64,000 bases of DNA from Macrostomum lignano. Its lineage: Eukaryota. Under the pieces are notes generated by a model, which was not told the origin of the DNA, made no database searches, and saw only the letters and a program-made list of their open reading frames with translations. How positions within the stretch are numbered: the first letter of the stretch is position 1; every line of letters begins with the position of its first letter. The position numbers were made by a program, and so were the translations under genes. The stretch spans positions 7,801 to 71,800 of the forward strand of contig NIVC01001384.1 in assembly GCA_002269645.1 (NCBI GenBank), written 5' to 3'. Below are positions 10,930 through 64,000 of the stretch, piece by piece.

Positions 10930-11775
10930 TTCACCTCTGTTTGTGTCCAGCTACCCCAGTTTGTGTCTAGCTACCTCTGTTTGTGTCCAGCTACACCAGT
11001 TTGTGTCTAGCTACCTCAGTTTGTGTCTAGCTACCCCAGTTTATGTCCAGCTACCCCAGTTTGTGTCTAGCTACCTCAGTTTGTGTCCAGCTACCCCAGT
11101 TTGTGTCTAGCTACCTCCGTTTGTGTCTAGCTACCTCAGTTTGTGTCTAGCTACCTCCGTTTGTGTCTAGCTAACTCAGTTTGTGTCCAGCTACCCCAGT
11201 TTGTGTCTAGCTACCTTAGTTTGTGTCTTAACTATCCCAGCTTGTGTCTAGCTACCTCAGTTTGTGTCTAGCTGCCTCAGTTTGTGTCTAGCTGCCTCAG
11301 TTTGTGTCTAGCTACCTCAGTTTGTGTCCAGCTACCCCAGTTTGTGTCTAGCTACCTTAGTTTGTGTCTTAACTATCCCAGCTTGTGTCTAGCTACCTCA
11401 GTTTGTGTCTAGCTACCTCAGTTTGTGTCTAGCTGCCTCAGTTTGTGTCTAGATACCTCAGATTGTGTCTTAACTATCCCAGCTTGTGTCTAGCTACCTC
11501 AGTTTGTGTCTAACTATCCCAGCTTGTGTCTAGCTACCTCAGTTTGTGTCTAGCTACCTCAGTTTGTGTCCAGCTACCTCAGTTTGTGTCTAGCTACCTC
11601 AGTTTGTGTCTTAACTATCCCAGCTTGTGTCTAGCTACCTCAGTTTGTGTCTAGCTGCCTCAGTTTGTGTCTAGATACCTCAGATTGTGTCTTAACTATC
11701 CCAGCTTGTGTCTAGCTACCTCAGTTTGTGTCTAGCTACCTCAGTTTGTGTCCAGCTACCCCAGTTTGTGTCTAG
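10930..11775. repeat. 20-bp minisatellite (CCAGTTTGTGTCTAGCTACC), array 1
   Basis: Tandem copies with variant units. Confidence 0.92.
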
Positions 11776-12409
11776 CCAATTCTATCTCTTATTAAATTTA
11801 TTTTCCTGGTGATAAATATCTGCTAAAAAAGTTAGTTCGCAATGCTGGCGACAGATTTGCACTTGTAAAATATGCAGATATTTTTGTAGCAGCAGTATTC
11901 ACAAATGACTCATCGGGCAGAAAGAAGCAGGTGATCAGGCAAAATTGTTTTAATGATTATGGTAGCAGAAAAATAGAATGAATAGAATAGAATACATACT
12001 ATACAGCAACACACTAAATTCACATGTATAGGTAATATATGAATACTGAAAGTTTGCTGAGTGGCATAAGTGCATACTGACAATATCTAGAAAGTCTATA
12101 AATATATCTAAAATCTTATTTGTTTTAATTAATGAGATCTGAAGGGCAAACGCAATAATAAATTAATGGCTTTGGTGAAAACTTAACTGTTTATGTTGCT
12201 TTGAATTCAGGATTAAATCGGGCGAGAAATATTTTGAAAATTAATAATTCACGAATAATTATTAATAGTATACAAAAATTATTAATAGTAAACAATGAAT
12301 TCTAGAATTTTGTGAGAAAATTATGCTCAAATTGGTTGTGCATTTATCGTTATAAAGTGCAGTATTGGCTATATTACATGTATCTGTACTAACTATGCCA
12401 CTATCGTGT

Positions 12410-13200
12410 CTACTAGCTACCCCAGTTTGTGTCTAGCTACCCCAGTTTGTGTCTAGCTACCTCAGTTTGTGTCTAGCTACCCCAGTTTGTGTCTAGCTAC
12501 CCCAGTTTGTGTCTAGCTACCTCAGTTTGTGTCTACCTACGTCAGCTTGTGTCTAGATACCTCAGATTGTGTCTAGCTACCCCAGTTTGTGTCTAGCTAC
12601 CCCAGTTTGTGTCTGGCTACCTCAGTTTGTGTCTACCTACGTCAGCTTGTGTCTAGATACCTCAGATTGTGTCTAGCTACCTCAGTTTGTGTCTACCTAC
12701 GTCAGCTTGTGTCTAGATACCTCAGATTGCGTCTAGCTACCTCAGTTTGTGTCTACCTACGTCAGCTTGTGTCTAGATACCTCAGATTGCGTCTAGCTAC
12801 CTCAGTTTGTGTCTAGCTACCCCAGTTTGTGTCTAGCTACCTCAGTTTGTGTCCAGCTACCCCAGTTTGTGTCTAGCTACCTCAGTTTGTGTCTAGCTAC
12901 CCCAGTTTGTGTCTAGCTACCCCAGTTTGTGTCTAGCTACCCCAGTTTGTGTCTAGCTACCCCAGTTTGTGTCTAGCTACCTCAGTTTGTGTCTAGCTAC
13001 CCCAGTTTGTGTCTAGCTACCCCAGTTTGTGTCTAGCTACCTCAGTTTGTGTCTACCTACGTCAGCTTGTGTCTAGATACCTCAGATTGTGTCTAGCTAC
13101 CTCAGTTTGTGTCTACCTACCCCAGTTTGTGTCTAGCTACCTCAGTTTGTGTCTAGCTACCCCAGTTTGTGTCCAGCTACCTCAGTTTGTGTCTAGCTAA
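12410..13200. repeat. 20-bp minisatellite (CCAGTTTGTGTCTAGCTACC), array 2
   Basis: Same unit as 10930-11775; ends 6 nt from the Kirre-like stop codon. Confidence 0.92.
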
Positions 13201-26660: not shown

Positions 26661-28692
26661 GTCTTGTTTCATCCAGCCGGGTTCAAGACCGAACACAAGC
26701 CAGCTGCAGAGCAAAAGAATTAATTCCGTGAAGTGGTCTAGCAAACATTGTTGCGCAGGGAGTAGGGAGGGGGTCGAGCGATCGACTTTCCCTCATCTCT
26801 CTCGTGTCCCTATATCTTCATCCTAGATGATGGCGGTGGTGGGGTGAGGGCAGTTTACAAGTCTCAGTTGTTGGACAAGCGCACTGGCCCCTATATAGGA
26901 TCAACAGGTTATTATACACAGGTTCCCTGCCAGCCCGCCCGCCAGTACCAGTCAGGCCCCAAATATGGCGCACTGGTGCTTCAATGCAATACGAGCGCTA
27001 TAGGCCGTTTCCTCGCCACTTTCTTATATTTATCTTTTTTCTCCTCTGATTAATTGGCTATAGCAGCACAGCACAGGGTGCCAGGGGCAGTAAAGAGGCG
27101 AGTGGGAGAGTGAGGGTGAGGATAAAGCAGATGGGGAAGTGCAAGAGGCCGCAATAAGTTATGGCGTAGCAATAAAAGGCGGTGCTGGGTGCCAAGGATA
27201 ATCTTGGCTAGAAAAGGGAGGCTGTAACAGTTGGCTTGCGGCCAACGATTACTAAAATGCTAGTTCTTAATAGCGGCTGGCGAAGCGTTCAGCAGCAGCA
27301 GGCTGATTATTTACGAGGAGAAGGAGAATTAAAGGTAGAGAAAAGGTGAGATTTTAGAAGTTAAGCTTATGTTTCAGAGAATTTTCCGATAATTTCGTAT
27401 AAAAATAACAATGGGAAAGTCATGGCCCTGTGTGAGTGCGCGCCTGCCCGTGTGTACACAGACACGCATAGTTCACATTGGGGTTGTACATCTGCCCTGA
27501 CTCCTCCCCCGTAGATTCCGTACGCAAACCACCGCCCCGCCACGCCCCCTTCCCCAAAATACGGGTATGACGGCCACGCCTTGGCCCGCGAAATCTGGGG
27601 TGGTGGGGTGGCCTGAGTGTACAGTGTGCCACTAGGATTGAGATACCAATCGATAAGCCAACCAATCAGAAACGAGAAGAGGGGAGGGAGAGAGAACCAT
27701 AGAGAGGAGGGAGAATGACTTAAAGTGCAATGACACAGAAGGACGAAAGCTGCGACAAGAAAAGAAAAATCACCGATAGAGAGAGAAGTGCTCCAGGAAA
27801 ATCATATCGGAAATCGGACACAAGCGCTTCTTAAATGGGGATTAAAGGGGATCCAAGGATGGACAGACAGCCGTTAGAAGTAAACAGATTTAGAGAAAGG
27901 GAAGAGGGAGTGAGAGATGGCCAGCAAATGCAAGAGAAGAAGATAAATGAAAACTCCCGCCACTGATGAAGGTTGGCGCTGGATAGCTGGGCCACAAAGC
28001 TCGGAGATAGTCTGCACTACTTTCTTCTTAGAGGCCTGCTCTACTCCCAGAGGCGGAAGGCCACTGCAAAATTAATATCCCAAAGTGCGCTGCGGGCTAA
28101 TCTCTTCTATTTGTTATGCTACTACTTTCGCTACGCCTACCGGCACCCAGCGGCCTCCCAAACTTCCAAGCCCGGGGGAGCCTTCCATCATTCTTTGCCA
28201 TCCTCCATTCATTCACTTCCCGTCTTTCCCGATCCCCCTGTCCTCTAACTTTTCCCTCCTTTCTCTCGCTGATCAGTTTCTTCTAATACTGCGGCTTTTG
28301 TAAGTTTCCATTCCTTTCCGTCAAGTCATTATTATGGTAACTTCATTCTTTCCTTTGCCAACCCTCTGGCACCATTTTTCATTCACTGCCACACTCCCGG
28401 CTGCGAACTAGCTGCTGCCTTCGGAAAAAAGCGCGTTGAAGCCCGTGTAACACGCGATCGCTTCTTGAGCAGCTGGCTGCTTGCAATGTCAGTCCGTTAA
28501 ACTTGTTCCTTGACATCTCTCATCTTTAGCAGTAAGAATATTAAGCCATCTTTCTCGAACGGGTCATCAGTTACTATCCTGACACCGTCGGCTGCTTGAG
28601 AGACTTGAGAGAGTTGAAGATCAGATTTCCTGGGACGCATGACTAAGCGCGCATGACATTAGCGTGCATTTTGAAACTGCTCTACGTGACAC

Positions 28693-34329: not shown

Positions 34330-36905
34330 ATCACCTTTGTTCTCTTAGTCTCACCTCTGCTCCCTATCATTTCTTCTACTCGCATCACAAATTTACTCTC
34401 TGTCTCCTTTTTGTATCACCTTTGTTCTCCGGATCTCTTCTGTTGTCTCACATTTACTCTCCGTCTCTTCTGTTGTCTCACCTTTACTCTCCGTCTCTTC
34501 TGTTGTCTCACCTTTACTCTCCGTCTCTTCTGTTGTCTCACATTTACTCTCCGTCTCTTCTGTTGTCTCACCTTTACTCTCCGTCTCTTCTGTTGTCTCA
34601 CCTTTACTCTCCGTCTCTTCTGTTGTCTCAGCTTTACTCTCCGTCTCTTCTGTTGTCTCACATTAACACTCTCCGGATCTCTTCTGTTGTCTCACCTTTA
34701 CTCTCCGTCTCTTCTGTTGTCTCACCTTTACTCTCCGTCTCTTCTGTTGTCTCACATTTACTCTCCGTCTCTTCTGTTGTCTCACCTTTACTCTCCGTCT
34801 CTTCTGTTGTCTCACATTTACTCTCCGTCTCTTCTGTTGTCTCACCTTTACTCTCCGTCTCTTCTGTTGTCTCACCTTTACTCTCCGTCTCTTCTGTTGT
34901 CTCACCTTTACACTCTCCGGATCTCTTCTGTTGTCTCACCTTTACTCTCCGTCTCTTCTGTTGTCTCACCTTTACTCTCCGTCTCTTCTGTTGTCTCACA
35001 TTTACTCTCCGTCTCTTCTGTTGTCTCACCTTTACTCTCCGTCTCTTCTGTTGTCTCACCTTTACTCTCCGTCTCTTCTGTTGTCTCACCTTTACTCTCC
35101 GTCTCTTCTGTTGTCTCACCTTTACTCTCCGTCTCTTCTGTTGTCTCACCTTTACTCTCCGTCTCTTCTGTTGTCTCACCTTTACACTCTCCGGATCTCT
35201 TCTGTTGTCTCACCTTTACTCTCCGTCTCTTCTGTTGTCTCACCTTTACACTCTCCGGATCTCTTCTGTTGTCTCACCTTTACTCTCCGTCTCTTCTGTT
35301 GTCTCACCTTTACTCTCCGTCTCTTCTGTTGTCTCACATTTACTCTCCGTCTCTTCTGTTGTCTCACCTTTACTCTCCGTCTCTTCTGTTGTCTCACCTT
35401 TACTCTCCGGATCTCTTCTGTTGTCTCATCTTTACTCTCTCTGGATCTTCTGTTGTCTCACCTTTACTCTCCGGATCTCTTCTGTTGTCTCATCTTTACT
35501 CTCCGTCTTTTCTGTTGTCTCACATTTACTCTCCGTCTCTTCTGTTGTCTCACCTTTACTCTCCGTCTCTTCTGTTGTCTCACCTTTACTCTCCGTCTCT
35601 TCTGTTGTCTCACCTTTACTCTCCGTCTCTTCTGTTGTCTCACCTTTACTCTCCGTCTCTTCTGTTGTCTCACCTTTACTCTCCGTCTCTTCTGTTGTCT
35701 CACATTTACTCTCCGTCTCTTCTGTTGTCTCACCTTTACTCTCCGGATCTCTTCTGTTGTCTCACCTTTACTCTCCGTCTCTTCTGTTGTCTCACATTTA
35801 CTCTCCGTCTCTTCTGTTGTCTCACCTTTACTCTCCGTCTCTTCTGTTGTCTCACCTTTACTCTCCGTCTCTTCTGTTGTCTCACCTTTACTCTCCGTCT
35901 CTTCTGTTGTCTCACCTTTACTCTCCGTCTCTTCTGTTGTCTCACCTTTACTCTCCGTCTCTTCTGTTGTCTCACCTTTACACTCTCCGGATCTCTTCTG
36001 TTGTCTCACCTTTACTCTCCGTCTCTTCTGTTGTCTCACCTTTACACTCTCCGGATCTCTTCTGTTGTCTCACCTTTACTCTCCGTCTCTTCTGTTGTCT
36101 CACCTTTACTCTCCGTCTCTTCTGTTGTCTCACATTTACTCTCCGTCTCTTCTGTTGTCTCACCTTTACTCTCCGTCTCTTCTGTTGTCTCACCTTTACT
36201 CTCCGGATCTCTTCTGTTGTCTCATCTTTACTCTCTCTGGATCTTCTGTTGTCTCACCTTTACTCTCCGGATCTCTTCTGTTGTCTCATCTTTACTCTCC
36301 GTCTCTTCTGTTGTCTCACCTTTACTCTCCGTCTCTTCTGTTGTCTCACATTTACTCTCCGTCTCTTCTGTTGTCTCACCTTTACTCTCCGTCTCTTCTG
36401 TTGTCTCACATTTACTCTCCGTCTCTTCTGTTGTCTCACCTTTACTCTCCGTCTCTTCTGTTGTCTCACCTTTACTCTCCGGATCTCTTCTGTTGTCTCA
36501 TCTTTACTCTCTGGATCTTCTGTTGTCTCACCTTTACTCTCCGGATCTCTTCTGTTGTCTCATCTTTACTCTCTGGATCTTCTCGTTGTCTCATGGACTC
36601 TCTGGATCTCTTCTGTTGTCTCACCTTTACTCTCCGTCTCTTCTGTTGTCTCACCTTTACTCTCCGGATCTCTTCTGTGGTCTCACCTTTACTCTCCGGA
36701 TCTCTTGTCTCACCTTTACTCTCCGTCTCTTCTGTTGTCTCACCTTTACTCTCCGTCTCTTCTGTTGTCTCATCTTTACTCTCTGGATCTTCTCGTTGTC
36801 TCATGGACTCTCTGGATCTCTTCTGTGGTCTCACCTTTACTCTCCGGATCTCTTGTCTCACCTTTACTCTCCGTCTCTTCTGTTGTCTCACCTTTACTCT
36901 CCATC
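34330..36905. repeat. ~2.5-kb 30-bp minisatellite (TCTCACCTTTACTCTCCGTCTCTTCTGTTG)
   Basis: Tandem copies with recurring variant units; generates the 899/864/664-aa ORFs. Confidence 0.96.
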
Positions 36906-38100: not shown

Positions 38101-38949
38101 ACTCACGGACTCACGCACAATCTCCCAAACGCCTTCGAATTAGCTATGTCTGTTGACATTATGGGTAGCATTGCTCTAGGTCGAGGGAAAGTTGATATTT
38201 GCAAGAAAAGTTCGGCCAAGGCTCGCTAGCTTTCCTACCTGCCTGGGTCATATTTTTCTGATTGTACGAGTACATCAGCGCGCCGAGATGGATCGGACCG
38301 GACAGAATCCCTGACTAGACAGGCGGAGCTCTGGCCTAGCAAACAGACTGCTGGTTGGCCTAATCGACATCCGCGGTCTTTCCTCGGTTCGCCTGTCTGT
38401 CGGCTTTGCTCAATTCGTTATGGATTATGCATACATGCCGGTTTCAGTTAGGAGTCTTGGAATCCACCCGAGCTGGGGATGTCTAAGCAGTACTTGGACG
38501 GAGGCTTAATTACTGCTGGGATGCCAGCTACTTGGGAAAGAAATTATTTTATATAAGGGTACAGAGAGCTAAGTAAAGAGAAAGGAAGGCTAGGGAGGTG
38601 AAGGGTACAAAGGAAGTTAAGGGTAGAAAGGCAGTTAAAAGGGTAAAAAAGCAGTTAAAAGGGTAGAAAAGCAGTTAAAAGGGTAGAAAGGCAGTTAAAA
38701 GGGTAGAAAAAGTTGAGGGTAGAAAAGAAACGGAGGGTAGAAAGTTCCTGTCCTGAATCAGAGTGCAGATGCATGCTTCTATTCCAATCCTACTCACTTC
38801 ACAGGACTTCACAGGGAGCTTTTGCCGCAGCAAATGCGAGGCAGACAGGCAGTTTCCATCCATTAGCGACCTCTAGCATAAATCATTTCTCAGGGAAATT
38901 CTGCTTCTGGTAGAGAATGTTAATCAGCTTCGAGAACGTGCCGAAAAGA

Positions 38950-39315
38950 AGCAGGAAAAGAAAAAGTTTTGACAACTCCCTAGGGGACCGGGATCTCATC
39001 TGCACCATGAGACTTGTGCTCTAAAAAAATTGAAAAACTGTTAGATAAATTCAGCTTCAGATCATGTTTTGTACTCAGTAGGTGTCTCAGTATGTCTGCA
39101 GCTTGAAGTCTCATGTCCCTCGACCACTTACTGCAGGTGTTGTTTACAAGTTTCAGTGCCCTGAGGATCAGAAAATCTCTTGCATAGGGAAAACGAAGCG
39201 ACAACTGTACACTAGGATCAAGGAGTATTGGACTAAAAGATCAGCCTTCCAAGAACACCTGCTCACGTGTGACTCATGTTGTAGCAGCAAACCTCTCGAC
39301 TTGTTTAAGATCAGT
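38950..39315 (+). mobile_element. Degenerate Penelope-like element fragment (GIY-YIG endonuclease)
   Basis: LKSHVPRPLTAGVVYKFQCP...SCIGKTKRQLYTRIKEY...SAFQEHLLTC matches the PLE GIY-YIG pattern (VVYkf.C...YIG.T.R.L..R..EH). Catalytic motifs are altered and the fragment is cut off by a minisatellite. Confidence 0.8.
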
Positions 39316-40440
39316 AGCTAGATTTCCAGTTAGATTTGCTGTAGCTAGATTTCCTGTAGCTAGATTTCCTGTAGCTAGATTTCCTGTAGATAGATTTCCT
39401 GTACCTAGATTTCCTGCAGCTAGATTTCCTGTACCTAGATTTCCTGTAGCTAGATTTCCTGTAGCTAGATTTCCTGTAGCTAGATTTCCTGTAGCTAGAT
39501 TTCCTGTAGCTAGATCTCCTGTAGCTAGATTTCCTGTAGCTAATTTCCTGTAGCTAGATTTCCTGCAGCTAGATTTCCTGTACCTAGATTTCCTGTAGCT
39601 AGATTTCCTGTAGCTAATTTCCAGTAGTTAGATTTCCAGTTAGATTTCCTTTAGCTAGATTTTCAGTAGTTAAATTTCCAGTTAGATTTCCTGTAGCTAG
39701 ATTTCCTGTAGCTAGATTTCCTGTAGCTAGATTTCCTGTAGCTAGATCTCCTGTAGCTAGATTTCCTGTAGCTAGATTTCCTGTAGCTAGATTTCCTGTA
39801 GCTAGATTTCCTGTAGCTAGATTTCCTGTAGCTAGATTTCCTGTAGCTAGATCTCCTGTAGCTAGATCTCCTGTAGCTAGATTTCCTGTAGCTAGATTTC
39901 CTGTAGCTAGATTTCCAGTAGCTAGATTTCCAGTAGTTAGATTTCCAGTAGTTAAATTTCCAGTTAGATTTCCTGTAGCTAGATTTCCTGTAGCTAGATT
40001 TCCTGTAGCTAGATTTCCTTTAGCTAGATTTTCAGTAGTTAAATTTCCAGTTAGATTTCCTGTAGCTAGATTTCCTGTAGCTAGATTTCCTGTAGCTAGA
40101 TTTCCTGTAGCTAGATTTCCTGTAGCTAGATTTCCTGTAGCTAGATTTCCTGTAGCTAGATCTCCTGTAGCTAGATTTCCTGTAGCTAGATTTCCTGTAG
40201 CTAGATTTCCTGTAGCTAGATTTCCTGTAGCTAGATTTCCTGTAGCTAGATTTCCTGTAGCTAGATCTCCTGTAGCTAGATTTCCTGTAGCTAGATTTCC
40301 TGTAGCTAGATTTCCTGTAGCTAGATTTCCAGTAGCTAGATTTCCAGTAGTTAGATTTCCAGTTAGATTTGCTGTAGCTAGATTTCCTGTAGCTAGATCT
40401 CCTGTAGCCAGATTTCTAGATTTCCTGTAGCTAGATTTCC
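39315..40440. repeat. 15-bp minisatellite (CTAGATTTCCTGTAG)
   Basis: About 1.1 kb of tandem copies. Confidence 0.95.
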
Positions 40441-43651: not shown

Positions 43652-44149
43652 AACTCGCCCAGCAACTGTTGCAGATGAGGCTCCGTGTGAAACATTAAAA
43701 AAGTGTAAATAAAACCTGCTAAGACTCGGTTAAAAATGAATATGAAAGCTCTGATTGTTGTCTCTGGTTTGTTTGTGCATGCCGCTTTAAATTAACCAGC
43801 TGTTGTCGTGTGCTCCCATTCGCTGTTTTTTTGAAGCTTTTCGATTTAAGAATTTATTAGATCAGTGTATAAAAATATGTTTTAGCAAGGATTTTTTGTT
43901 GGATTATTTTATTAAGTAAATATGCACTACTTATTACTGTTACGTTCGTACTATCAGTAGTTGCCTCAGAGAATTGCACCTTGTAAAAAATTTCTAACTA
44001 GTCAGCAAGCGGCTTTTACTATGCAAAATTAAAATATATTTTATTTTGAAATTAGTGACTGATTATGAGCTGTATCCACCTTCCGGACAATAAATTTGTA
44101 ATAGCATTTGTCACTGTTTTTTGTAAGTGACCCGAGTTTCTTGGTAAGC

Positions 44150-45000
44150 CATGCGCATTCACCGAAGATTCACGCAAGCCCATTCACACATGCCCATGAT
44201 TCTTGGAAATTCATTCACATTCACCAGTTTCCGAGAAACGAATTCACATTTGCTCATGATTCCAGGAAACGCATTCACATTCACCCAATATTCTAGGAAA
44301 CCCATTCACATTCGCCCAGAGTACTAGGAAACCCATTCACGTTCGCCCACGATTCTAGGGAACATATGCATTCCCATTCAACTCAAGATTCTAGGAAACC
44401 CATTAACATTCACTCAAGATTCTAGGAAACCCATTCACATTCACTCAAGATTCTAGAAAACCCATTCACATTCACTTAAGATTCTAGAAAACCCATTCAC
44501 ATTCACTCAAGATTCTAGGAAACCCAATCACATTCACTCAAGATTCTAGGAAACCCATTCACATTCACTCAAGATTCTAGGAAACCCAATCACATTCACT
44601 CAAGATTCTAGGAAGCTCATGCACATTCACTCAAGATTCTAGGAAGTCCATGCATTCACATTTACCCAATATTCTAGGAAACCCATTCACATTCACTCAA
44701 GATTCTAGAAAACCCATTCACATTCACTCAATATTCTAGGAAACCCATTCACATTCACTCAAGATTCTAGGAAACCCATTCACACTCACTCAAGATTCTA
44801 GGAAACCCATTCACATTCTCTCAAGATTCTAGGAAGCTCATGCACATTCACTCAAGATTCTAGGAAGTCCATGCATTCACATTTACCCAATATTCTAGGA
44901 AACCCATTCACATTCACTCAAGATTCTAGGAAGCCCATTCAAATTCACCCAATATTCTAGGAAACCCATTCAGTTTCGCCCACGATTCTAGGAAACCTAC
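44150..45000. repeat. ~31-bp minisatellite (CTAGGAAACCCATTCACATTCACTCAAGATT)
   Basis: Tandem copies. Confidence 0.9.
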
Positions 45001-48900: not shown

Positions 48901-50066
48901 GGAACTCTTCTTGTCTGTTCTGATCTGTTCTGCTTCTGCTTCTGCTTCTGCTTCTGCTTCTGTTTCTGCTTCTGTTTCTGTTTCTGCTTCTGTTTCTGCT
49001 TCTGTTTCTGTTTCTGCTTCTGCTTCTGTTTCTGTTTCTGTTTCTGTTTCTGTTTCTGTTTCTGTTTCTGTTTCTGTTTCTGCTTCTGTTTCTGTTTCTG
49101 TTTCTGTTTCTATTTCTGCTTCTGCTTCTGCTTCTGTTTCTGTTTCTGTTTTTGTTTCTGCTTCTGTTTCTGTTTCTGTTTCTGTTTCTATTTCTGTTTC
49201 TGCTTCTGTTTCTGTTTCTGTTTCTGCTTCTGCTTCTGTTTCTGTTTCTGTTTCTGTTTCTATTTCTGTTTCTGTTTCTGCTTCTGCTTCTGCTTCTGTT
49301 TCTGTTTCTGTTTCTGTTTCTGTTTCTGCTTCTGTTTCTGCTTCTGTTTCTGTTTCTGCTTCTGTTTCTGTTTCTGTTTCTGTTTCTGCTTCTGCTTCTG
49401 TTTCTGTTTCTGCTTCTGTTTCTGTTTCTGTTCTGTTCTGTTCTGTTCTGTTCTGTTCTGTTCTGTTCTGTTCTGTTCTGTTCTGTTCTGTTCTGTTCTG
49501 TTCTGTTCTGTTCTGTTCTGTTCTGTTCTGTTCTGTTCTGTTCTGTTCTGTTCTGTCTCTGTTCTGTCTCTGTTCCGAGTGCCCACCCGAACCCCGGCCT
49601 GAATCCCGCAGGCGTCATGCACGAGGAGATCCTGGAGCACATTCTAGCCCAGATCTTCCCGCTGGGCAACGCGCACCTGTTCTCCCATTTCGTCTTCTGC
49701 TGCTTCGACGTGAACCGGACCGGCTCGGTAAACTTTGAGCAGTTCGTGCTCTGCCTGAACATCCTGCTGAAGGGCAGCCGGGAGGAGCGGCTGCGCTGGA
49801 TCTTCAACATGTACGACATCAACAGGGACGGCGAGATCAACCGGCGCGAGCTGCAGGAGCTTGTCGGCGCCGTTTTCGAACTGCTCGGCGCCCGAGTGCG
49901 ACCGGCTGTGTCTCCCGGCGACATCGAACGTCATACTGGCGAAGTTTTCTGTCGACTGGACACCGACGGCGACGGAGTGATCAGCTGGGAGGACTTCCGG
50001 GCTCACTTCCGCCGGAACCCGCAGCTGGCAGCCGAAATGGACGCCCTGCTCACCCCTATTGCTTAA
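45912..50066 (+). CDS. KCNIP: Kv channel-interacting protein (KChIP/calsenilin)-like neuronal calcium sensor
   Basis: Exon 45912-46305 (..[35 protein letters not shown]|) joins exon 49612-50066 in phase 1. EF-hand loops [24 protein letters not shown] and [12 protein letters not shown]; [21 protein letters not shown] matches the KChIP consensus. Confidence 0.9.
46370..46700. repeat. ~25-bp intronic repeat (TCATCAAAGAGATTGGGGTGGCGGC)
   Basis: Tandem degenerate copies. Confidence 0.85.
47530..47860. repeat. ~52-56 bp intronic repeat (TGTACATTTCCTGCACGCCAATTAAGTTCCCCCCTCTCTCTCTCCACTGAA)
   Basis: About 6 copies. Confidence 0.88.
48925..49565. repeat. Compound (TTCTGT/TTCTGC)n + (GTTCT)n microsatellite
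   Basis: Directly upstream of the KChIP exon-2 acceptor. Confidence 0.95.
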
Positions 50067-53111: not shown

Positions 53112-53759
53112 CACTCGGTCATACTATTTTATTATTAACTTTTACTAAGCGCTTCTGATATTTGCTCTTATAGTGATATTACCGTCTATTCATTTCTCTC
53201 CTTTGTTACAATCTATTTTTTAGAAAATTTCAATACCATATTATAAAAATAAATGTGTAAATTACATCAAGAATGTAAAATCCCACAAATCTACGAGATT
53301 TTTGTAATTTGTGAGCAACACTCCATTCACCCCGATGTGGGTATACTCAATACCACTCCCCCATTTTTAATCATCCCTCAAACATTTCCGTGTAATCAAT
53401 TATAAAACTGAAAATACTCTGCCTACACTACTGCATCTACTGAAATAAGTAGCGCTTTAGATTTATGACTTTTTAAAAAATCTCTGAAAAAATAAAAAGA
53501 AAAGTTCTAGTAACTTAGGATTTCAAATCAAGCCGTTTATGACGCCAAAGTTGAATTTGTAGCGTGAAAAATTTTATTTAATAATTAATTCGTGCTCCTT
53601 CAAAGTAGACAGATGTTGCAGAACAGGCAGCCATTGTTAACTATTGCTGACATCCTTTTCAGTTGCTGTCGGTAATCCAATTCCAGCTCTGCGGATGGCG
53701 CTCTGAAGTGCAGTTTGGAGCGGAGCATCAAGTTCAATTGCGAGTGTTCCTTTCCATAT

Positions 53760-54330
53760 CTTTCCTCTCTGTATCTCCCTCTCTGTATCTCCCTCTCTGT
53801 ATCTCCCTCTCTGTATCTCCCTCTCAGTATCTCCCACTCTACGTATCTCCCTCTCCGTATCTCCCTCTCCGTATCTCCCTCTCAGTATCTCCTTCTCCGT
53901 ATCTCCCACTCTCCGTATCTCCCTCTCAGTGTCTCCTTCTCCGTATCTCCCACTCTGTATCTCCCTCTCAGTATCTCCTTCTCCGTATCTCCCACTCTCC
54001 GTATCTCACTCTCTGTATCTCCCTCTCTGTATCTCCCTCTCTGTATCTCCCTCTCTGTATCTCCCTCTCTGTATCTCCCTCTCAGTATCTCCCACTCTAC
54101 GTATCTCCCTCTCCGTATCTCCCTCTCCGTATCTCCCTCTCAGTATCTCCTTCTCCGTATCTCCCACTCTCCGTATCTCCCTCTCAGTGTCTCCTTCTCC
54201 GTATCTCCCACTCTGTATCTCCCTCTCTGTATCTCCCTCTCTGTATCTCCCTCTCCATATCTCCCACTCCGTATCTCCCTCTCCGTATCTCCCTCTCCGT
54301 ATTTCCCTCTCCGTATCCCCCTCTCTCCGT
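53760..54330. repeat. 14-bp minisatellite (TCTCTGTATCTCCC), array 2
   Basis: Same unit and orientation as 50420-50760. Confidence 0.92.
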
Positions 54331-54666
54331 AGATTTCTCAGGCTGCTATTAGCAATCGTTTTCTTAATCAACAAACTTGAATGCTCCTATTCTGCTGTCT
54401 AAGCCTGAAGCCCAGTTCAATTCATCGGTTGATGACTCAACCCCTCCCCCCCCCCTATTGAGCGTTTCTGTCTAAAAAGCTGCCTTTTAGCTTTTCTAAT
54501 AACTGAAGTCGGACCAGGCGTGAATAATGGGATTGGGATAATTTCCCGAAACGAAAAACTCCACGTTGCTACATATGGATGATGTAGAGCTTTGGGAGCT
54601 CACTGCAATTTCTCAGTTTTGGTGGTGGCTAATTAGATAATAATTCCCCCAATTAATACAAGTAAC

Positions 54667-55325
54667 CTAATCTGCAGGTGCTAGATTAGCAATCCATTGT
54701 ATTCGTGCATCCTTGTGGGCTAGATTAGCAATCCATTCTATTCCTGCATCCTTGTGGGCTAGATTAGCAATCCATTCTATTCCTGCATCCCTGTGGGCTA
54801 GATTAGCAATCCATTCTATTCCTGCATCCTTGTGGGCTAGATTAGCAATCCATTCTATTCCTGCATCCTTGTGGGCTAGATTAGCAATCCACTCTATTCC
54901 TGCATCCTTGTGGGCTAGATTAGCAATCCATTGTATTCCTGCATCCTTGTGGGCTAGATTAGCAATCCATTCTATTCCTGCATCCTTGTGGGCTAGATTA
55001 GCAATCCATTCTATTCCTGCATCCTTGTGGGCTAGATTAGCAATCCATTCTATTCCTGCATCCTTGTGGGCTAGATTAGCAATCCATTCTATTCCTGCAT
55101 CCTTGTGGGCTAGATTAGCAATCCATTCTATTCCTGCATCCTTGTGGGCTAGATTAGCAATCCATTCTATTCCTGCATCCTTGTGGGCTAGATTAGCAAT
55201 CCACTCTATTCGTGCATCCTTGTGGGCTAGATTAGCAATCCATTCTATTCCTGCATCCTTGTGGGCTAGATTAGCAATCCATTCTATTCCTGCATCCTTG
55301 TGGGCTAGATTAGCAATCCATTCTG
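54667..55325. repeat. 39-bp intronic minisatellite (GCTAGATTAGCAATCCATTCTATTCCTGCATCCTTGTGG)
   Basis: About 17 copies, starting ~40 nt after the donor at 55363 on minus. Confidence 0.95.
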
Positions 55326-55362
55326 AGTTCAAATGAATCGCAGAATTGAACCACGGACTTAC

Positions 55363-55768
55363 CCTCAGCCATCTCAATCAGCTTCATTTCTAATAGATGT
55401 TCAGCGACATTGCCGAATCGAGCCTCGGACCTCTTCCTGCCCGGATGCCACGAGTTGTGAAAGTGGACGCTGCGGAAGTAGGCGGGCCGGTCTTCGGAGG
55501 AGCCGCCGCCCCCGCCGCCGCCGCCCCCGCTGCTGCCACCCCCGCCGCCAGCCGGAGTCATCGACTGCTGCGGCTGCTGACTGCGACAGGCCGGTCCCCA
55601 GCTTCTGCACGGCATCAGGTTGAAGAAGCGTCGAGCTCTCGACAAAGTTGGCGAAGCCGAAGATGGCGGAGTAGCTAGACAGAGGCCGGTCAGCAGCAGC
55701 AGCAGCAGCGGCAGCAGGTGCAGCGGCGGCTGTCGTTTGTACAGCGCGCCATCGGCTGGCGAAGGCAT
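55363..55768 (-). CDS. Neuropeptide precursor exon: Cys-loop peptide + GnRH/corazonin-like SVHFHNSWHP-G-RKR
   Basis: ATG 55768; hydrophobic signal core LHLLPLLLLLLTGLCLA; RARR site; FFNLMPCRSWGPAC; Gly-rich spacer; R-SVHFHNSWHPG-RKR (55471-55430); donor GAGG|GTAAGT at 55363 (phase 1). Phase-compatible 3' exon candidates: 54502-54417 (V-IRKAKRQLFRQKRS..) or 53749-53637 (G-TLAIELDAP..). Confidence 0.85.
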
Positions 55769-56079
55769 GGCTGATGATGGAATAGTTTGAGCTGGCTGGT
55801 TCAATTGGATGACAGTCTCCGGGTCAGGCCTTCCAGATTGATGGCGAAGTTCGCGAGGGGCGGCTTGATTTTATTTTTGGCAGAGGGAATGCCCGGGGAA
55901 TCAGGGGGATTGGCTAACTGGGAGTCGGGCCACTCATCCACTCGCTACACCTGGCTGCGATCACAGAAAATTGTTTTGAGTCACTGTTAGCCAACTCTGA
56001 GTTGATGTGAAACCTGGCACAGCTGCTGAAGCAGCTGTAGAACAAAAATGGATCACTGATTTCTGTTTCTTCGCCATCC

Positions 56080-56390
56080 ACTTTGTCACTTTTTATCTTG
56101 TCACTCTCCACCTTGTCAGGTTCCGTCTTGTCACTCTCTCCCTTATCAGGTTCCGTCTTGTCACTCTCTAACTTGTCAGGTTCCGTCTTGTCACTCTCTC
56201 CCTTATCAGGTTCCGTCTTGTCACTCTCTCCCTTATCAGGTTCCATCTTGTCACTCTCTAACTTGTCAGGTTGCGTCTTGTCACTCTCTACCTTGTCAGG
56301 TTCCGTCTTGTCACTCTCCACCTTGTCAGGTTCCGTCTTGTCACTCTCCACCTCGTCAGGTTCCGTCTTGTCACTCCCTTCCTTGTCACT
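56080..56390. repeat. 30-bp minisatellite (TCACTCTCTCCCTTATCAGGTTCCGTCTTG)
   Basis: About 10 copies. Confidence 0.9.
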
Positions 56391-57109
56391 CTAGCTCTCT
56401 ATCGGTCTCCGCACATCCCCTGCCTCTCTAATTAAGAAAAGATCAGGTAAAGTTCAGGTAAACCCATCATAGAATCTGTCAGTGAGCGGCGTTCATGAGG
56501 CACGGAGTTCAATGGGGATTCATGAGGATTTATAAAGCCAGTTAATTTTGATAATTTGATTACATGTTACTGACATTCCGTGCCCAATCCTGGCAACACG
56601 CAGAGCTCATGTATTTTTAACTTCATCGCAAAAATGATTATAAAAAATCCTCTGTTTAGAGGCGGGCCCAGTGCAAGCTTCTAATTTTGGCATCAATCCG
56701 ACGTCATCTGCAGGCTTCGATTCAGCGCATTCAGAAACGGTTGGATGGATGAATGGATCACGAGAACGGGAAGGGGCCGGTTGAGTGCGGAAGAGTTTGG
56801 CTGACAAAAATTGGCTCAGAGCCAAGCTGCACGAGGCCGCGCGCTCTGGCGCACAGCGCCATCAAGCTCAGTTGAAGCTCAGTCACCCAGTGCAGCTGCA
56901 CAGATTGACTGACCGAGCTCGCCCACGCATGCCTGGGAGGAGTTAGGGAACAACACACCTACGCTTTTGCCCTGAGGCGATTCTGCCCTGAGAGACTGAC
57001 TGGGCGGGCTCGAAGAGACAAGCTGAGGGATTTGTATAGGAATGTTTGAAACTAAGAGAGATGGATGAATATGGAAAAAAGATCGAGAGGATGACAAAGA
57101 GAGAAGAGA

Positions 57110-57590
57110 GGTTGGCGGAGGGAGACGGAGAGGGAGGCGGAGGGAGACGGAGAGGGAGGCGGAGGGAGATGGAGAGGGAGGCGGAGGGAGACGGAGAGGG
57201 AGGCGGAGGGAGATGGAGAGGGAGGCGGAGGGAGATGGAGAGGGAGGCGGAGAGGGAGGCGGAGGGAGATGGAGAGGGAGGCGGAGGGAGATGGAGAGGG
57301 AGGCGGAGAGGGAGGCGGAGGGAGACGGAGAGGGAGGCGGAGGGAGATGGAGAGGGAGGCGGAGGGAGATGGAGAGGGAGGCGGAGGGAGATGGAGAGGG
57401 AGGCGGAGGGAGATGGAGAGGGAGGCGGAGGGAGACGGAGGGAGGCGGAGGGAAATGGAGAGGGAGGCGGAGGGAGATGGAGAGGGAGGCGGAGGGAGAC
57501 GGAGGGAGGCGGAGGGAGATGGAGAGGGAGGCGGAGGGAGACGGAGAGGGAGGCGGAGGGAGACGGGGAGAGAGACTGAGGGGGAGACGG
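57110..57590. repeat. Purine-rich GGAGGGAGATGGAGAGGGAGGC repeat
   Basis: Tandem degenerate copies. Confidence 0.9.
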
Positions 57591-59459
57591 AGATGGAGAG
57601 GAATAGGCAGAGAGGTGCAGTCGCACAAAAATAATGGCTACATGATGCAGGTAAAAGTTATGTAAGGAACAATGGCGTGATCCCATCATCAAAACCGTGT
57701 GGGGGGTGGCATTTCCGCACAGGACAGCAGCTGATCAAGTGTTTAGTTGTCAACAGCAGCAGCAGCTTGAGCTACTCATGCAGATTAAACAGATGAAGCA
57801 GCTCCCTTGGCCGTTGCCATTGGTGCCCGAGCCCAAACAGTCGCCAAGGCGGACAGTGCAGGGAAATCCAAATGAGAATGAGCGGAGAGCGTAATGTAAA
57901 AGCATGAAAAAAGCAAACCATGCAATGAACACTGGAAGCTCCATGCCACATGTACTGCAGAGCGCAACAGCCCAATTATGAAATTATTATTCATAAAATT
58001 TATTAATCTAAATAATCGCGGTGGCCTAAGAAATAAGAAACAAATTTAGTGCTTCAAAGCTTCTGCAGGTGCCGGGCAATGGTTTGTTTCTCAGAAAAGA
58101 TTTGATCGAAGCTTATAAACATACTGAAGGTATAGTGGCGGAAAACCACTGGAATATTGAAGAAAACACAGTTAGTAAAATCAGGCAGTTCCCAGTGAAA
58201 CTGGATGAAGCAATAGCAGTGGAAGCAACAGGTGGAGCAGGTGAGAGGAAAAAACAATGCTGGACAGCTGTTGGTTCGATGCCAGACGCCGCAGGCGCTG
58301 GGGTGAGTACGCAATTTACAGTTTACATACAGTACACACAGATACTGGAATAACTAGATGAGCCACTCAGCACATTTGCGTGAAAGCTACTTTCAGTTCA
58401 GTAGTAAGTTAAACAGAAGCATTTTATTGTATTTTTAAAGCCAAGGCTCTTTTCATTGGCTTTTACCCCCCAGCCTTAAACCCTCCAACCGCGCATTTCC
58501 ACACTACCCCCCGCGCACTCTAACTTTTATTGCCTTTCTCGGAATTCCAGCCTAAAGCTGCCATGTACATAGTGGACTGGCCAATGTACATTATGGCTGA
58601 ACCAATTAGCAAGCTGTTTACGCCTGCAAGCTTGAGCTTCTAAACTTATCAAAGTCATCTCAGCTGGCTTTATTTTATAAAATAGCTTATGCATTCTTCT
58701 CTGCTACTGAAAGTAGAAAGCTGCTTTACCATCTTGTCATTCTAGTATCTGTGCAGTACACTAGATACAGGTACAGATGAATGAGATCTATTTGAGGGGG
58801 GGGCTAAATCACAGTTTCTAGCAAATTCTCAACAATGATTAACAACAATAATAAAAAACCCGAGTAGATAATAACAGTACATGTGGATTACTAATCAGAG
58901 TTGGAGATTATGACAGACATTGCTTATTAAATGCTAATTAATCAAACCAGTTCACAGGCTTAACTAACAAATATTTGTTATAATAAGATTTTAGCTTTAG
59001 ATATTAATATAAATCATTTACGCAGTAAATTTACACACGATAATTAAGGTTATTTTGCATAAATATATGCATACTACACTACTACAGATAAGTAGCATTA
59101 GTAAAAAACAAAAATAGAAATGGTTTTATATACCTTAAAAAGATATGTAAAAGAGAAAAAATGGTTTGAGATTGTAGTCCCAATGAGCAGTTCACTTGGT
59201 CATGGTTTCTTAGAAAACCGACGAGATCCAGACAGCGCGCAAAATGAGCAGCAAAATTTTTAGATAGGGAATTTATTTCAGCTAGACAGGGTATCTTTGT
59301 CAACTATATAGATATTGGTAATTAGCTTCAACTCGATGGGGAATTATTTAGAGCTATATAGGGAATTATTTTGAACAAGATAGGGAATTATCCTAAAATA
59401 GATGGGGAATTATTTATGGCCGGAGTCAAACGGGGGTCACACGGGGGTCACACGCGGGG

Positions 59460-62092
59460 TCACTTCTGGTTCGGCTGAGCGTACAGGTCGGCCACAGGCC
59501 GGAAGTCCGGCCCCCAGCGGTGCAGCTCGCCGTAGTCCTGGCTGCGGTCGCTGTCGCCGCTGCACACTGAGCTGAGGTCGCCGGCCTCGCTGCCCTGGCC
59601 TTCGTAGCCGTAGTCCAGGGTGTACTCCAGCGCATCTGCCGGACCGTCGGGCGCATCGTCACCAGCCGGCGGAGCCCGCGACAGCGGCTGGACAAACTGA
59701 ACAGGCGGCGGCGGCGGCGACTCCGGCGCCCGTTTGAAAGTCGGGACGCCGTTCGGCACGCGCAGCAGCTGCAGATCGAAGTTCCTCGTGTCCTCCTCGC
59801 CGGCGCCGTCCTCGTCGTAGGCGACGACGTTCTCCCTGGTGTCCTTGTCCGGCTCCAGCAGCGGCTCGCCCATATGGCGCCGGCGGCACCACCAGACCAG
59901 CAGGGCCAGCAGGATGACCAGCACCAGGATGCCCAGCACCACGGCGACGATGATGCCGGCTCCGGCGACGGCGAACACCGGGACATTGCGGACCTCGCAG
60001 CGGGAGCCGAGAAGCCGGTGAGGCAGCGGCAGGTGAGGGCCAGGCCGCCACCGGGTATGCAGTAGCCGCCGTTTTGGCACGGGTTCAAAGGGAAGCACGG
60101 GCTGGCGTAGCACCTGGGGAAATGGTGATGGGGTTGTGGGATCTGGTGATGGGATCTGGATGATGGGATCTGGGTGATGGGATCTGGTGATGTGATCTGG
60201 GTGATGGGATCTTGGTGATGGGATCTGGATGATGGGATCTGGGTGATGGGATCTAAGTGATGGGATCTGGTGATGGGATCTGGATGATGGGATCTGAATG
60301 ATGGGATTTAAGTGATGGGATCTGGTGATGGGATCTGGGTGATGGGATCTGGTGATGGGATCTGGTGATGGGATCTTGGTGATGGGATCTTGGTGATGGG
60401 ATCTGGTGATGGGATCTGAGTGATGGGATATAGGTGCTGATATCTGGTGCTGGGATTTGGTGCTGGGATATGGGTGATGGGATCTGGTGATGGGATCTGG
60501 GTGATGGGTTGTGGGATCAGGTGATGGGATTTTGGTGATGGGATCTGGATGATGGGATCTGAATGATGGGATCTCATCATAGAACCATGGGATTTGCATT
60601 TTGCCTGTTCGTCTTCCTGTGCTAGTAACCATAACAACGGAGGCCAATATAGACTCACCGGTCGCCCCGCATGGTCCAGTCGGGCAGGCAGCCGCACACG
60701 GTGCTGCCGCTGGGCTGCAGGGTGCCCAGGCACACCTGGTTCTGCGGGCAGGTGGCGCCAGCCGGGCAGGCACCAACGCTGGGGTCGCTGCACCGGCTGA
60801 CCAGAGATAAGGCGGAACGGCGGAACAGCTCGGCCGCCGGGCTGCTGACGGCCGAGTCCGCCGGCAGGAGGGCGGAGTTGACGAGCGGTCCGGCCAGGCA
60901 GGAAGACTGCAGATCGTCCTGCGGCGGCTGCACCGTCACCTGGAAGGACGGGAGGGCGGGTCAATCGAATTGCTCATCTGGAGGGTATGAACTACGATTC
61001 ATAATTGGCGAATCGTAAAAACGACAGGAGTGAATGAGTCATACAACTGAGTGAGGCATATGAGTGAACGAGTCATAAAACTGGGTCATAGGAGTGAATG
61101 AGAGGTGAATGACTCATACAACGGAGTGATTCACAGGAGTGAATGAGTCATACAACTGACTGAGTCATAGGAGTGAATGAGTCATACAACTGAGTGAATC
61201 ATAGTAGTGAATGAGTCATCCAACTGAGTGAGTCATAGGAGTGAATGACTCATACAACTGAGTGAATCATAGTGTTGAATGAGTCATCCAACTGACTGAG
61301 TCATAGGAGTGAATGAGTCATACAACTGAGTGAGTCATAGGAGTGAATGACTCATACAACTGAGTGAGTCATAGGAGTGAATGACTCACAACTGAGTGAG
61401 TGAATGAGCTCTGAGCACAAATCCACAATAACAAAGCAAAAAGCTCACAGATCCAGTCGTATCCACCGTAACAGACGCGCCGCCGATGACGCCCTGGCCC
61501 AGCTGGATATAATTATAATTATAGACAAAGCTGCCCCACAATGTTGCATAGTTGATGCCTTCGCCAGAGTCCAGCATCACCTCCATCATGAGCTGGAGAC
61601 TGCGGCAGACTCGAACTGTGTGCAGACCGCCGTCGGACACGTTCGAGTTGGGCAGGACGGCCTCGCGCAGCACGTAGTCGCCGGTGTTCAGCTGGGCCAC
61701 CAGGCGGCTGTCCGCAGGCGGAGCGTCAGCTCTGCAGGTCTGTAGGGGTCGGCGCCCTGAGCTTTGAGCAGCACCCCACTGGGCTGCCGGCTGCGGAACT
61801 GCACCGACAGACAGGTGGACTGCTTTGGGGCGCCTGCGGTGTTGGGAGACGCGTAATTTAGTATAGCTGTCTGTCTGCCTGTCTGTCTGCCTGTCTGCCT
61901 GCCTGTCTGTCTGTCTGCCTGTCTGTCTGTCTGCCTGTCTGTCTGTCTGTCTGCCTGCCTGCCTGCCTGCCTGCCTGTCTGTCTGTCGGTCTGTCTGTAT
62001 GTCTGTCTGTCTTAGTGTCTGTCTGTCTGTCTGTCTGTCTGCCTGCCTGCCTGCCTGTCTGTCTGTCTGTCTGTCTGTCTTAGTGTCTGTCT

Positions 62093-62141
<49 letters not shown>

Positions 62142-63644
62142 CTGTCTTATTGTCTGTCTGTCTGTCTTAGTGTCTCTCTGTCTTAGTGTCTTTCTGTCTG
62201 TCTGTCTTTGTCTGTTTGTCTGTCTGTCTGCCTGTCTGTCTGTCTGTCTGTCTGTAATATCTCAATCAGAGAATCACTTGATTACAATACACATTTATCG
62301 CATCGTATTTACTTCCAGCATGCCTACTAACAGTAGATAAGTAGGCATTTTGCACTCACTCGATACAAAAGAACTCTGCAGCCTCCACCAGGCGTAGCTG
62401 TTGGCGCCCAGCTGCAAGGTTGGCGCCGGCACATCGCAGGCGCCGCTGGTGCTGTTGCGAACCCAGCCAGACTTGCAGTCGCATTGGTGGGGCGCCGAAG
62501 CCCCGATGGCGCCCCAGCAAAATCCGTTCGGACCGCAACGGGAAGCGGAGCATGATGCTTCGACCAGAGCCGAGAGCCAGACAGCGCCAGAGTGCGGATC
62601 GATTGTCAGCAACCAGATCGATCAGCTGGTTGCCAACCCGCAGCTGGGCCAGCTGGGCTACCACGCCTTGCCTCGGCAAGCCGGTGGGATACTGACTGCT
62701 CGAGTCCGCTTGGTAGCGACCACCGATCTAAATATTGTTCAATCGGTTGCGAGAAATCAAAAACACAGAAGGGAAGGAAGGAGCTGGTACAGAGAGGTTG
62801 TGACCTGTGAGCCAACCAATGAGCGCTAAGCGTGGGGTAGAGAGGAAATTGAGTGGATAACCAGTTAGAGTGAGGAGGGCTGCGAGCAACCAATGAGCGC
62901 TAAGCTAAGATAGAGAGGAAATCGAGGTGGTGAAGCAAGTCGGAGTGAGGAGGGCTGGAGCCAGCCAATGAGCGCTAAGCGTGGGATAGAGAGGAAATGA
63001 GGTGGTGAAGCAATCGGAGTGAGGAGGGGTTGCGAGCCACCAATGAGCGCTAAGCTAAGATAGAGAGGAAAATCGAGTGGTGAAGCAAATCGGAGTGAGG
63101 AGGGGCTGTGAGCCAGCCAATAAGAGCAAAGCACTGGCTGATAACCGAAGACAAACCTGCACGGGCCAGTCGCCAGTGTCGAGTCCCAAGCCGGCCGGGG
63201 TGGCCTCAGCTAGGCAGTTGTTAGCAAGCGATGGCGCAGTGCCGCCGTTGGTGAGGGCGGCGTGGTCAACCCCGGAGCCGGTGCACTGATCCAGCACCAG
63301 AGCGACCCGAGAGGAGCCGGAGGACTCTGTTGAACGCGCAGTTGGGGTCACGGTGAGGTCAACCCGATGCCAGCGCGAGTCGTCCAGCCTTGGGCCACCG
63401 GAGATGGCCAAATCGATGGCCCGGAGCCGAGGTCGATGCGAGCTCGCAGCTTGCCGGTGACCAGGTGTACGCTGAGAAAGTCGGGCTGGCTGGGCGCAGG
63501 GCTGGCTGGCTGCCCGTAGGGCCCGGTGTACAGCAGGATGCCGTCCGCGCTGCTGGTCAGGAAGCTGAAGCTCAGGTTTAACGAGCGGCAGCTGGTGTCG
63601 AGCGGGTCGGTCATTAGGTAGCCTGTGGAGGCGTTGAATCCAAC
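59460..63644 (-). CDS. CadN: Classical cadherin (type III / DN-cadherin-like), 3' part: LamG-EGF-LamG-EGF-EGF-TM-cytoplasmic domain; four apparent frameshifts
   Basis: Exons on minus: 63644-63157, 62727-62360, 61833-61449, 60939-60659, 60113-59460. LamG motifs (LNLSFSFLTSSADGILLY, LDDSRWHRVDL, LSVQFRSRQPSGVLL); EGF (NPCQNGGYC..CRCLTGF); TM GIIVAVVLGILVLVILLALLVWW; p120-binding DTRENVVAYDEDGAGEED; beta-catenin-binding DYGYEGQGSEAGDLSS..WGPDFRPVADLY. Frame breaks at ~63420, ~62560-62600, ~61715 and ~60010. The gene continues beyond the window. Confidence 0.88.
60120..60580. repeat. 13-14 bp intronic repeat (GATGGGATCTGGT)
   Basis: Fills the last cadherin intron. Confidence 0.92.
61030..61410. 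repeat. Intronic repeat (GAGTGAATGAGTCATACAACTGAGTGAGTCATAG)
   Basis: Tandem degenerate copies. Confidence 0.85.
61868..62255. repeat. (CTGT/CTGC)n intronic microsatellite
   Basis: Direct observation. Confidence 0.93.
62810..63130. repeat. ~65-bp intronic repeat (CCAATGAGCGCTAAGC..AGAGAGGAAA..GGAGTGAGGAGGGG)
   Basis: About 5 degenerate copies. Confidence 0.8.
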
Positions 63645-63719
63645 CTGGAAACAGTTTTGAATAGGTGGGAATTGAATCGAATTGAATAGGTGGATAATGA
63701 TGGAGCTTGTTTAGATCGA

Positions 63720-64000
<281 letters not shown>

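Follow-up and report, generated by a model that had tools for sequence, protein, structure and literature searches.

GnRH/corazonin (CRZ)/AKH signalling is among the few peptide systems that can be traced to the bilaterian ancestor. Oct-GnRH (pQNYHFSNGWHPGa), Hr-GnRH (pQSIHFSRSWQPa) and Cg-GnRH represent the 'invertebrate GnRH/corazonin-type' peptides of molluscs and annelids (PMC7697785). In all the mollusc precursors that we retrieved (P0004-P0012) a Gln lies directly behind the hydrophobic leader, and most members of the set formed by these precursors and Smed-grh-1 have an associated peptide with two Cys. Smed-grh-1 (Collins et al. 2010, PMC2953531) and polyclad genes place the family in the flatworms, as the sequence-only reading of the present locus had suspected. 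Flatworm members are sparsely documented, amounting to this one planarian gene and polyclad sequences that are partly unpublished. In Smed-grh-1 the Gln coincides with the predicted signal-peptide cut or lies no more than 4 residues from it; FRL-type peptides and two Cys are found in the associated region of this precursor. Xenacoelomorphs provide a case that departs from the one-peptide layout, one paralogue bearing two ligand copies (PMC6188537). The GnRH/AKH-like precursors of nemertodermatids and Xenoturbella yield ligands without an N-terminal Gln, and their peptides (ANGFTGSHNWSPG-KKR) stay close behind the signal peptide (Thiel et al. 2018, PMC6188537). The name 'M.lig' appears in a figure legend of the same paper (PMC6188537).

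Here we describe a candidate member from Macrostomum lignano, which would add a data point from an early-branching flatworm lineage. The window, by which we mean the whole analysed stretch of 64,000 nucleotides, contains R-SVHFHNSWHPG-RKR at 55474..55430 on the minus strand by direct translation, exactly where it had been reported earlier without mention of the strand. The locus looks like a compact, complete-looking two-exon gene that would encode a secreted protein of 149 aa, a reading that draws on the combination of promoter motifs, ATG, donor, terminal exon, AATAAA and codon-position GC. The ORF holding the motif spans 55310..55804 (minus strand) and is preceded by an in-frame stop at 55805-55807; the first ATG in this frame occurs at 55768 and has a G at -3. 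A putative core promoter at 55868..55913(-), recognised by motif reading, combines a CCAAT (55913-55909) with a TATA-like AAAAATAAAAT (55878-55868) located about 105 nt 5' of the start codon, and no ATG occurs between the TATA-like motif and 55768. Started at this ATG, exon 1 covers 55768..55363(-) and terminates in a consensus donor, G/GTAAGT, at the junction 55363/55362. The phase-1 intron that follows (53703..55362(-), 1,660 nt) interrupts the frame 22 codons past RKR and harbours a 39-bp minisatellite at 54680-55324, with 16.5 copies that are 98% identical, together with a 14-bp array at 53764-54331. A pyrimidine-rich acceptor (...cacttcag/) opens the terminal coding exon at 53659..53702(-), whose 14 codons specify (E)RHPQSWNWITDSN before the stop TGA (53661-53659), and an AATAAA polyadenylation signal lies 81 nt past the stop codon (53573..53578(-)). 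GC content by codon position in the annotated frame is 0.64, 0.59 and 0.72 for positions 1, 2 and 3, GC3 being the highest; the window's cadherin and Ig exons likewise have their highest GC at position 3. The intronic 39-bp minisatellite also generates mechanical ORFs of 236 aa (minus strand) and 207 aa (plus strand), which are not genes.

One database record covers the locus. P0001 (UniRef A0A1I8GWJ3, Macrostomum lignano, 82 aa) is 100% identical to it over window positions 53659-55567 on the minus strand. It is an automated, N-terminally truncated model that begins within exon 1 and joins the 14 further codons (E)RHPQSWNWITDSN, so that an independent gene model has the same exon junction. 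Its name, 'Spondin domain-containing protein', is unsupported, because the sequence has no Pfam match, and is apparently an annotation artefact.

How readily could such a motif arise by chance? We built a PSSM from 11 published lophotrochozoan GnRH/CRZ-type peptides, ten of them from molluscs and annelids (table in PMC7697785) and the eleventh the planarian Smed-GRH-1 (supplement of PMC2953531), with the window sequence excluded. RSVHFHNSWHP scores 22.3 bits on this matrix and ranks first among about 128,000 six-frame positions of the window, the next one reaching 14.4. Under the window's amino-acid composition, 22.3 bits corresponds to p 1.1e-8 per position and to 0.0014 expected occurrences per window. 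Extended to the M. lignano genome of ~764 Mb, the expectation is about 17 chance 11-mers, or about 0.012 when a Gly and two basic residues must follow, a figure that applies before an in-frame signal peptide is also demanded. Three weaker resemblances within the window were discarded as chance matches: QNFHFFNITHM at 2058-2090(-), which attains 14.4 bits, has no processing site and has stops nearby; KN*HFSNRW at 27242-27280(-), with stops and no processing site; and FPSSWHP at 38518-38553, interrupted by stops and likewise devoid of a processing site.

These expectations weigh heavily against the idea that the resemblance is fortuitous and belongs to a spurious ORF in GC-rich DNA or to an erroneous gene model, with no neuropeptide gene at all. 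Exon 1 is GC-rich, with two trinucleotide repeats in it, and ORFs of 93-96 aa are open in its other frames as well, so that ORF length by itself is weak evidence. Moreover, database support consists of a single fragmentary, automated gene model whose name lacks support, and no homologues were found. Against this, motif and processing site together are expected about 0.01 times per genome even before signal peptide, donor, terminal exon and AATAAA are considered, and codon-position GC fits coding sequence; we regard a fortuitous origin as very improbable. The plus-strand ORFs of 93-96 aa that overlap the gene are by-products of the GC-rich stretch.

The PSSM also situates the peptide within the superfamily. 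In leave-one-out scoring, the reference peptides obtain 23.3 (leech), 28.6 (Capitella), 28.7 (Lottia), 30.2 (Schmidtea) and up to 43.2 bits, so the M. lignano sequence, with a score close to that of the leech, is the lowest of the family range. Other branches of the superfamily score 10.2 (Lottia AKH), 13.4 (insect corazonin), 3.5-10.2 (echinoderm) and 4-6.6 bits (nemertodermatid), the last of these separating the M. lignano peptide from the Gln-less xenacoelomorph ligands on the lophotrochozoan matrix. The alignment is free of gaps and gives 6/11 identities each with the octopus, leech and planarian peptides. The family core motif x-x-[YFIV]-H-[FY]-S/x-x-x-W-x-[PAS] is present, and the HF-x-N-x-W-H-P core, a C-terminal amidation signal and a single ligand copy per precursor are shared with molluscs and annelids. 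Smed-grh-1 is likewise a flatworm sequence with a single copy (QSYHFSNDWLPG-KR in the planarian versus RSVHFHNSWHPG-RKR in M. lignano, the Gly being identical in addition to the 6/11), and in both precursors the ligand is followed by an amidation Gly, a basic site for cleavage and an associated region at the C-terminus. Assignment to the ligand family is therefore supported by the PSSM score, its rarity by chance, the leave-one-out range and the gap-free alignment, in keeping with the GnRH/corazonin-type resemblance that the earlier reading had pointed out.

Might the peptide instead be an AKH-like (GnRH-type sensu stricto) decapeptide? Published criteria for AKH/AKH-like peptides comprise a length of 8-10, pQ1, an aliphatic or aromatic residue 2, FS/FT/YS at positions 4-5, W8 and a W(G)(X)amide ending, or WXG/WXPamide for 'AKH-like' peptides (Li et al. 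2016, PMC5024129). Cleavage at Arg99 would make the M. lignano product a decapeptide with Val2, Phe4, Trp8 and a WXPamide end, agreeing with four of these features (length 10, residue 2, W8, WXPamide; PMC5024129). However, SVHFHNSWHPamide departs from the set as a whole, having no pGlu and showing FH instead of FS/FT/YS at positions 4-5. It is also clearly less similar to lophotrochozoan AKHs, those of Lottia and oyster, than to GnRH/CRZ-type peptides, with BLOSUM62 pairwise scores of 17-23 against AKH-type and 26-45 against CRZ/GnRH-type sequences. In addition, no AKH signalling was found in the other platyhelminths examined by Li et al. 2016 (PMC5024129). We consider the AKH-like interpretation improbable and retain the GnRH/CRZ-type assignment. 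On its sequence the ligand is a clear member of that family, and the layout of the predicted precursor is unusual.

The translation of exon 1 reads MPSPADGALYKRQPP-LHLLPLLLLLLTGLCLA-TPPSSASPTLS-RARR-FFNLMPCRSWGPACRSQQPQQSMTPAGGGGGSSGGGGGGGGGSSEDRPAYF-R-SVHFHNSWHP-G-RKR-SEARFGNVAEHLLEMKLIEMAE. Its N-terminus, MPSPADGALYKRQPP-LHLLPLLLLLLTGLCLA/TPP, displays the three parts of a signal sequence when read by eye, namely a charged n-region, a 17-residue hydrophobic core and Cys/Ala at -3/-1, in accordance with the signal-peptide-bearing ORF that had been proposed. The start codon and the sequence for the predicted signal peptide MPSPADGALYKRQPPLHLLPLLLLLLTGLCLA (residues 1-32) map to 55673..55768(-), and the poly-Leu run of the signal peptide is encoded by (CTG)n. 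Downstream are 11 residues, a furin/PC-type site R-A-R-R (residues 44-47, 55628..55639(-)), FFNLMPCRSWGPACRS... and a poly-Gly/Ser spacer, AGGGGGSSGGGGGGGGGSS (residues 73-91, 55496..55552(-)), which is encoded by a GCC/GGC trinucleotide repeat, (GGC)n, coinciding with a TRF array of period 3 at 55502-55554. The GnRH/corazonin-type core SVHFHNSWHP (residues 100-109) occupies 55442..55471(-), identified by PSSM, leave-one-out and pairwise scores, and the amidation signal follows at 55430..55441(-), with Gly110 at 55441-55439 and the tribasic RKR (residues 111-113) at 55438-55430. The rest of the exon (55363..55429(-)), up to the junction also found in P0001, encodes the beginning of the C-terminal associated peptide, namely SEARFGNVAEHLLEMKLIEMAE, and contributes one base, the first, to the Glu136 codon.

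Two rules by which such genes are recognized, a pGlu at position 1 and a ligand abutting the signal peptide, are violated by this layout. Gln is present at the first position in 11/11 reference peptides; here it is replaced by Arg99 (CGC, 55474-55472(-)). With the predicted cut after Ala32, 67 residues separate the signal peptide from the ligand start at Ser100, within the 65-70 that had been estimated. The missing N-terminal Gln and the internal position, both noted beforehand as deviations from the canonical layout, stand out clearly when set against the retrieved mollusc precursors and Smed-grh-1. Since both recognition rules are broken, searches that combine motif and position would miss genes of this kind.

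Alternative splicing could in principle restore the canonical arrangement by putting the ligand directly behind the signal peptide, for example through the AG of ...cttccgcag/C just before Val101. A pyrimidine-rich AG does exist at 55471-55470; a suitable upstream exon with an ATG, a hydrophobic leader that ends in Gln and a phase-2 GT donor was found nowhere within about 6 kb, and the GT dinucleotides within exon 1 match the donor consensus poorly. We attach hardly any credence to such a splice form, and take the two-exon structure with an internal ligand as the working model.

The associated peptide likewise deviates from the known precursors. It is 36 residues long and has no Cys, so the mature layout of a single ligand followed by a Cys-pair associated peptide is reproduced in the copy number (one per precursor) and not in the Cys pair; the only Cys pair of the precursor, C54 and C61, is N-terminal to the ligand. 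A 'KLIE' in the associated peptide also occurs in bivalve precursors (shuffle p 0.03-0.07, uncorrected). Homology of the associated peptide to mollusc precursors was rejected on these uncorrected bivalve values and on non-significant results for the other species. AKH and CRZ genes are described as sharing a phase-0 intron that lies past the ligand (Li et al. 2016, PMC5024129), whereas that of M. lignano is in phase 1, a comparison that covers the phase.

The segment between RARR and the spacer deserves separate consideration. It includes FFNLMPCRSWGPACR (residues 48-62, 55583..55627(-)), a Cys-x6-Cys stretch that is the candidate 'first peptide' and that we leave unclassified. The precursor had been read as a two-peptide one. 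RARR and Cys-x6-Cys are indeed present, but the FFNLMPCRSWGPAC... segment has neither an amidation signal nor a dibasic C-terminal boundary, with just single Arg residues following, and the Cys-x6-Cys segment gave no family match in protein database searches, Pfam or a literature string search. The two-peptide description is therefore at most a possible reading. Presumably the segment is like elevenin, allatostatin-C and CCHamide solely in its short disulfide ring, and we derive no assignment from this. It may be a second bioactive peptide or simply a pro-region.

How would the precursor be processed? Signal peptidase would cut after Ala32 and prohormone convertases at RARR47 and RKR113, after which a carboxypeptidase would trim the basic residues and PAM (peptidylglycine alpha-amidating monooxygenase) would convert Gly110 to Pro-amide, generating the end ...HFHNSWHP-NH2. 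A cut at Arg99 (RPAYFR/S; P6 Arg, P1' Ser) would most likely free the N-terminus and leave SVHFHNSWHPamide, an unblocked decapeptide; amidated forms extended at the N-terminus, such as PAYFRSVHFHNSWHP-NH2, would also be possible. Cleavage at Arg99 is the weak point of this model, and exact release of the decapeptide is uncertain. The site fits the monobasic rule (R/K)-Xn-(R/K) with n = 4. Under Devi's monobasic rules, Phe at P2 is reportedly unfavourable. Single-Arg sites with no basic P2/P4 residue contribute just 5% in cleavage data from pig prohormones (PMC3499383). The earlier prediction of SVHFHNSWHP-amide is thus upheld for its C-terminus, where the Gly-RKR amidation and cleavage signal is in place, and its exact N-terminus hinges on an uncertain monobasic cut. 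A neural PC2 homologue exists in M. lignano; its knock-down produces a strong RNAi phenotype in which reproductive organ development stops (PMC4490696). The predicted receptor is a rhodopsin GPCR of GnRH/CRZ type, and receptors of this type couple to Ca2+ in the molluscan systems tested (PMC7697785).

Relatives of the precursor were sought in several ways. With the whole exon-1 protein as query, a word-indexed search across 5.8 billion proteins was dominated by poly-G/poly-L words and returned the self-match alone, and removal of the low-complexity parts left six candidates, again with the self-match alone. HMMER against 1.84 billion representatives recovered, besides the self-match, two artefacts due to poly-Gly, namely P0003 and the synthetic linker protein P0002. 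A scan of metagenome contigs gave 382 pattern matches, none of them confirmed, and exact-sequence look-ups returned nothing for P0001 or for the unspliced ORF taken from each of its two starts. A concatenated-motif query for a canonical copy in M. lignano or other flatworms retrieved mollusc precursors alone. Altogether no orthologue, paralogue or transcript was found in the databases searched, sets that seem nearly devoid of Macrostomum data. The self-match-only result is uninformative on conservation because M. lignano itself is present as one fragment. The precursor has no match in Pfam, and this result is equally uninformative because the bona fide Smed-grh-1 has none either. The strings HFHNSW, VHFHNS, NSWHPG and FFNLMPC do not occur in the literature searched. 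The proposal of a 'rearranged or fused' origin for the precursor stays inferential, since no orthologue or paralogue was retrieved.

The main rival explanation envisages a divergent, relaxed or decaying duplicate, either neofunctionalised or an incipient pseudogene, with a canonical copy of the form signal peptide-Q-x-[YIV]-HF elsewhere in the genome. It owes this standing to the recent polyploidy of M. lignano, in which a whole-genome duplication has been described in the literature. Arg in place of Gln1, the in-frame (CTG)n and (GGC)n expansions in the precursor and a PSSM score at the bottom of the family range are all features that a relaxed copy could show. However, the amidation Gly, the tribasic site, the reading frame, the signal peptide and the splice and poly(A) signals are all intact, and the Arg falls exactly where an N-terminal cut is required. 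No second copy is found among the annotated M. lignano proteins, an annotation that is incomplete. We hold the relaxed-duplicate explanation to be unlikely, though less so than the other alternatives considered.

Based on these observations, we propose that the locus is probably a genuine two-exon M. lignano neuropeptide gene (149 aa) with an amidated GnRH/corazonin-type product, homologous to Smed-GRH-1 and to the mollusc and annelid 'invertebrate GnRH/CRZ' peptides. The motif at its exact position, the independent gene model with the same exon junction and the first rank on the PSSM support this proposal. The GC3 pattern, the TATA-like motif with its first ATG, the GTAAGT, the pyrimidine-rich acceptor and the AATAAA also speak for it. 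In addition, the family already exists in flatworms, M. lignano possesses a PC2 homologue and Gln-less precedents are available from xenacoelomorphs. Gln1 and signal-peptide adjacency are missing, the associated peptide is Cys-less, the intron is in phase 1 and the searches retrieved no orthologue, paralogue or transcript, and these points count against it.

More tentatively, and with considerable doubt, we suggest that Macrostomum has re-built the precursor, so that an interior ligand would be released by a monobasic cut with a free N-terminus, alongside a co-released disulfide-loop peptide, FFNLMPCRSWGPAC, of unfamiliar kind. If true, this precursor architecture would be undescribed for the GnRH/AKH/corazonin superfamily and would allow a natural test of the need for pGlu in receptor activation; an active peptide would bear on the importance of a blocked N-terminus for receptor binding. 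The finding reveals no new signalling system, as the family is already known. M. lignano is transparent and open to transgenesis. RNAi works in this species (PMC4490696), and a reproductive or metabolic role of the peptide is therefore directly testable.

The neighbourhood of the gene was also inspected. Just upstream, the ORF 59460-60776(-) contains a cadherin cytoplasmic domain (PF01049, E 2.7e-15) and a transmembrane-like segment; this ORF probably represents the final exon of a classical cadherin gene, and it encloses an array of 14-bp repeats (60137-60574). Ig-domain exons (Ig_3/I-set, E down to 7.6e-13) at 18141-20671(-) are interleaved with 12-bp and 20-bp tandem arrays. A 30-bp tandem array at 34392-36902 comprises about 82 copies over 2.5 kb, shows an extreme asymmetry between the strands, with a GC skew of -0.46 and an AT skew of -0.57, and keeps ORFs of 660-900 aa open in all three plus-strand frames, with no Pfam match. 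Unrelated micro- and minisatellites (periods 4-39 bp) are unusually dense across the window, many of them in or beside coding exons; examples are the arrays at 10933-13199, 18280-18895, 19152-19985, 39314-40416, 44138-44997, 48924-49574, 56096-56388, 57106-57598, 60137-60574, 61867-62255 and 63712-64000. Minisatellites of period 12-39 bp produce most of the long mechanical ORFs, and the window is otherwise ordinary metazoan DNA.
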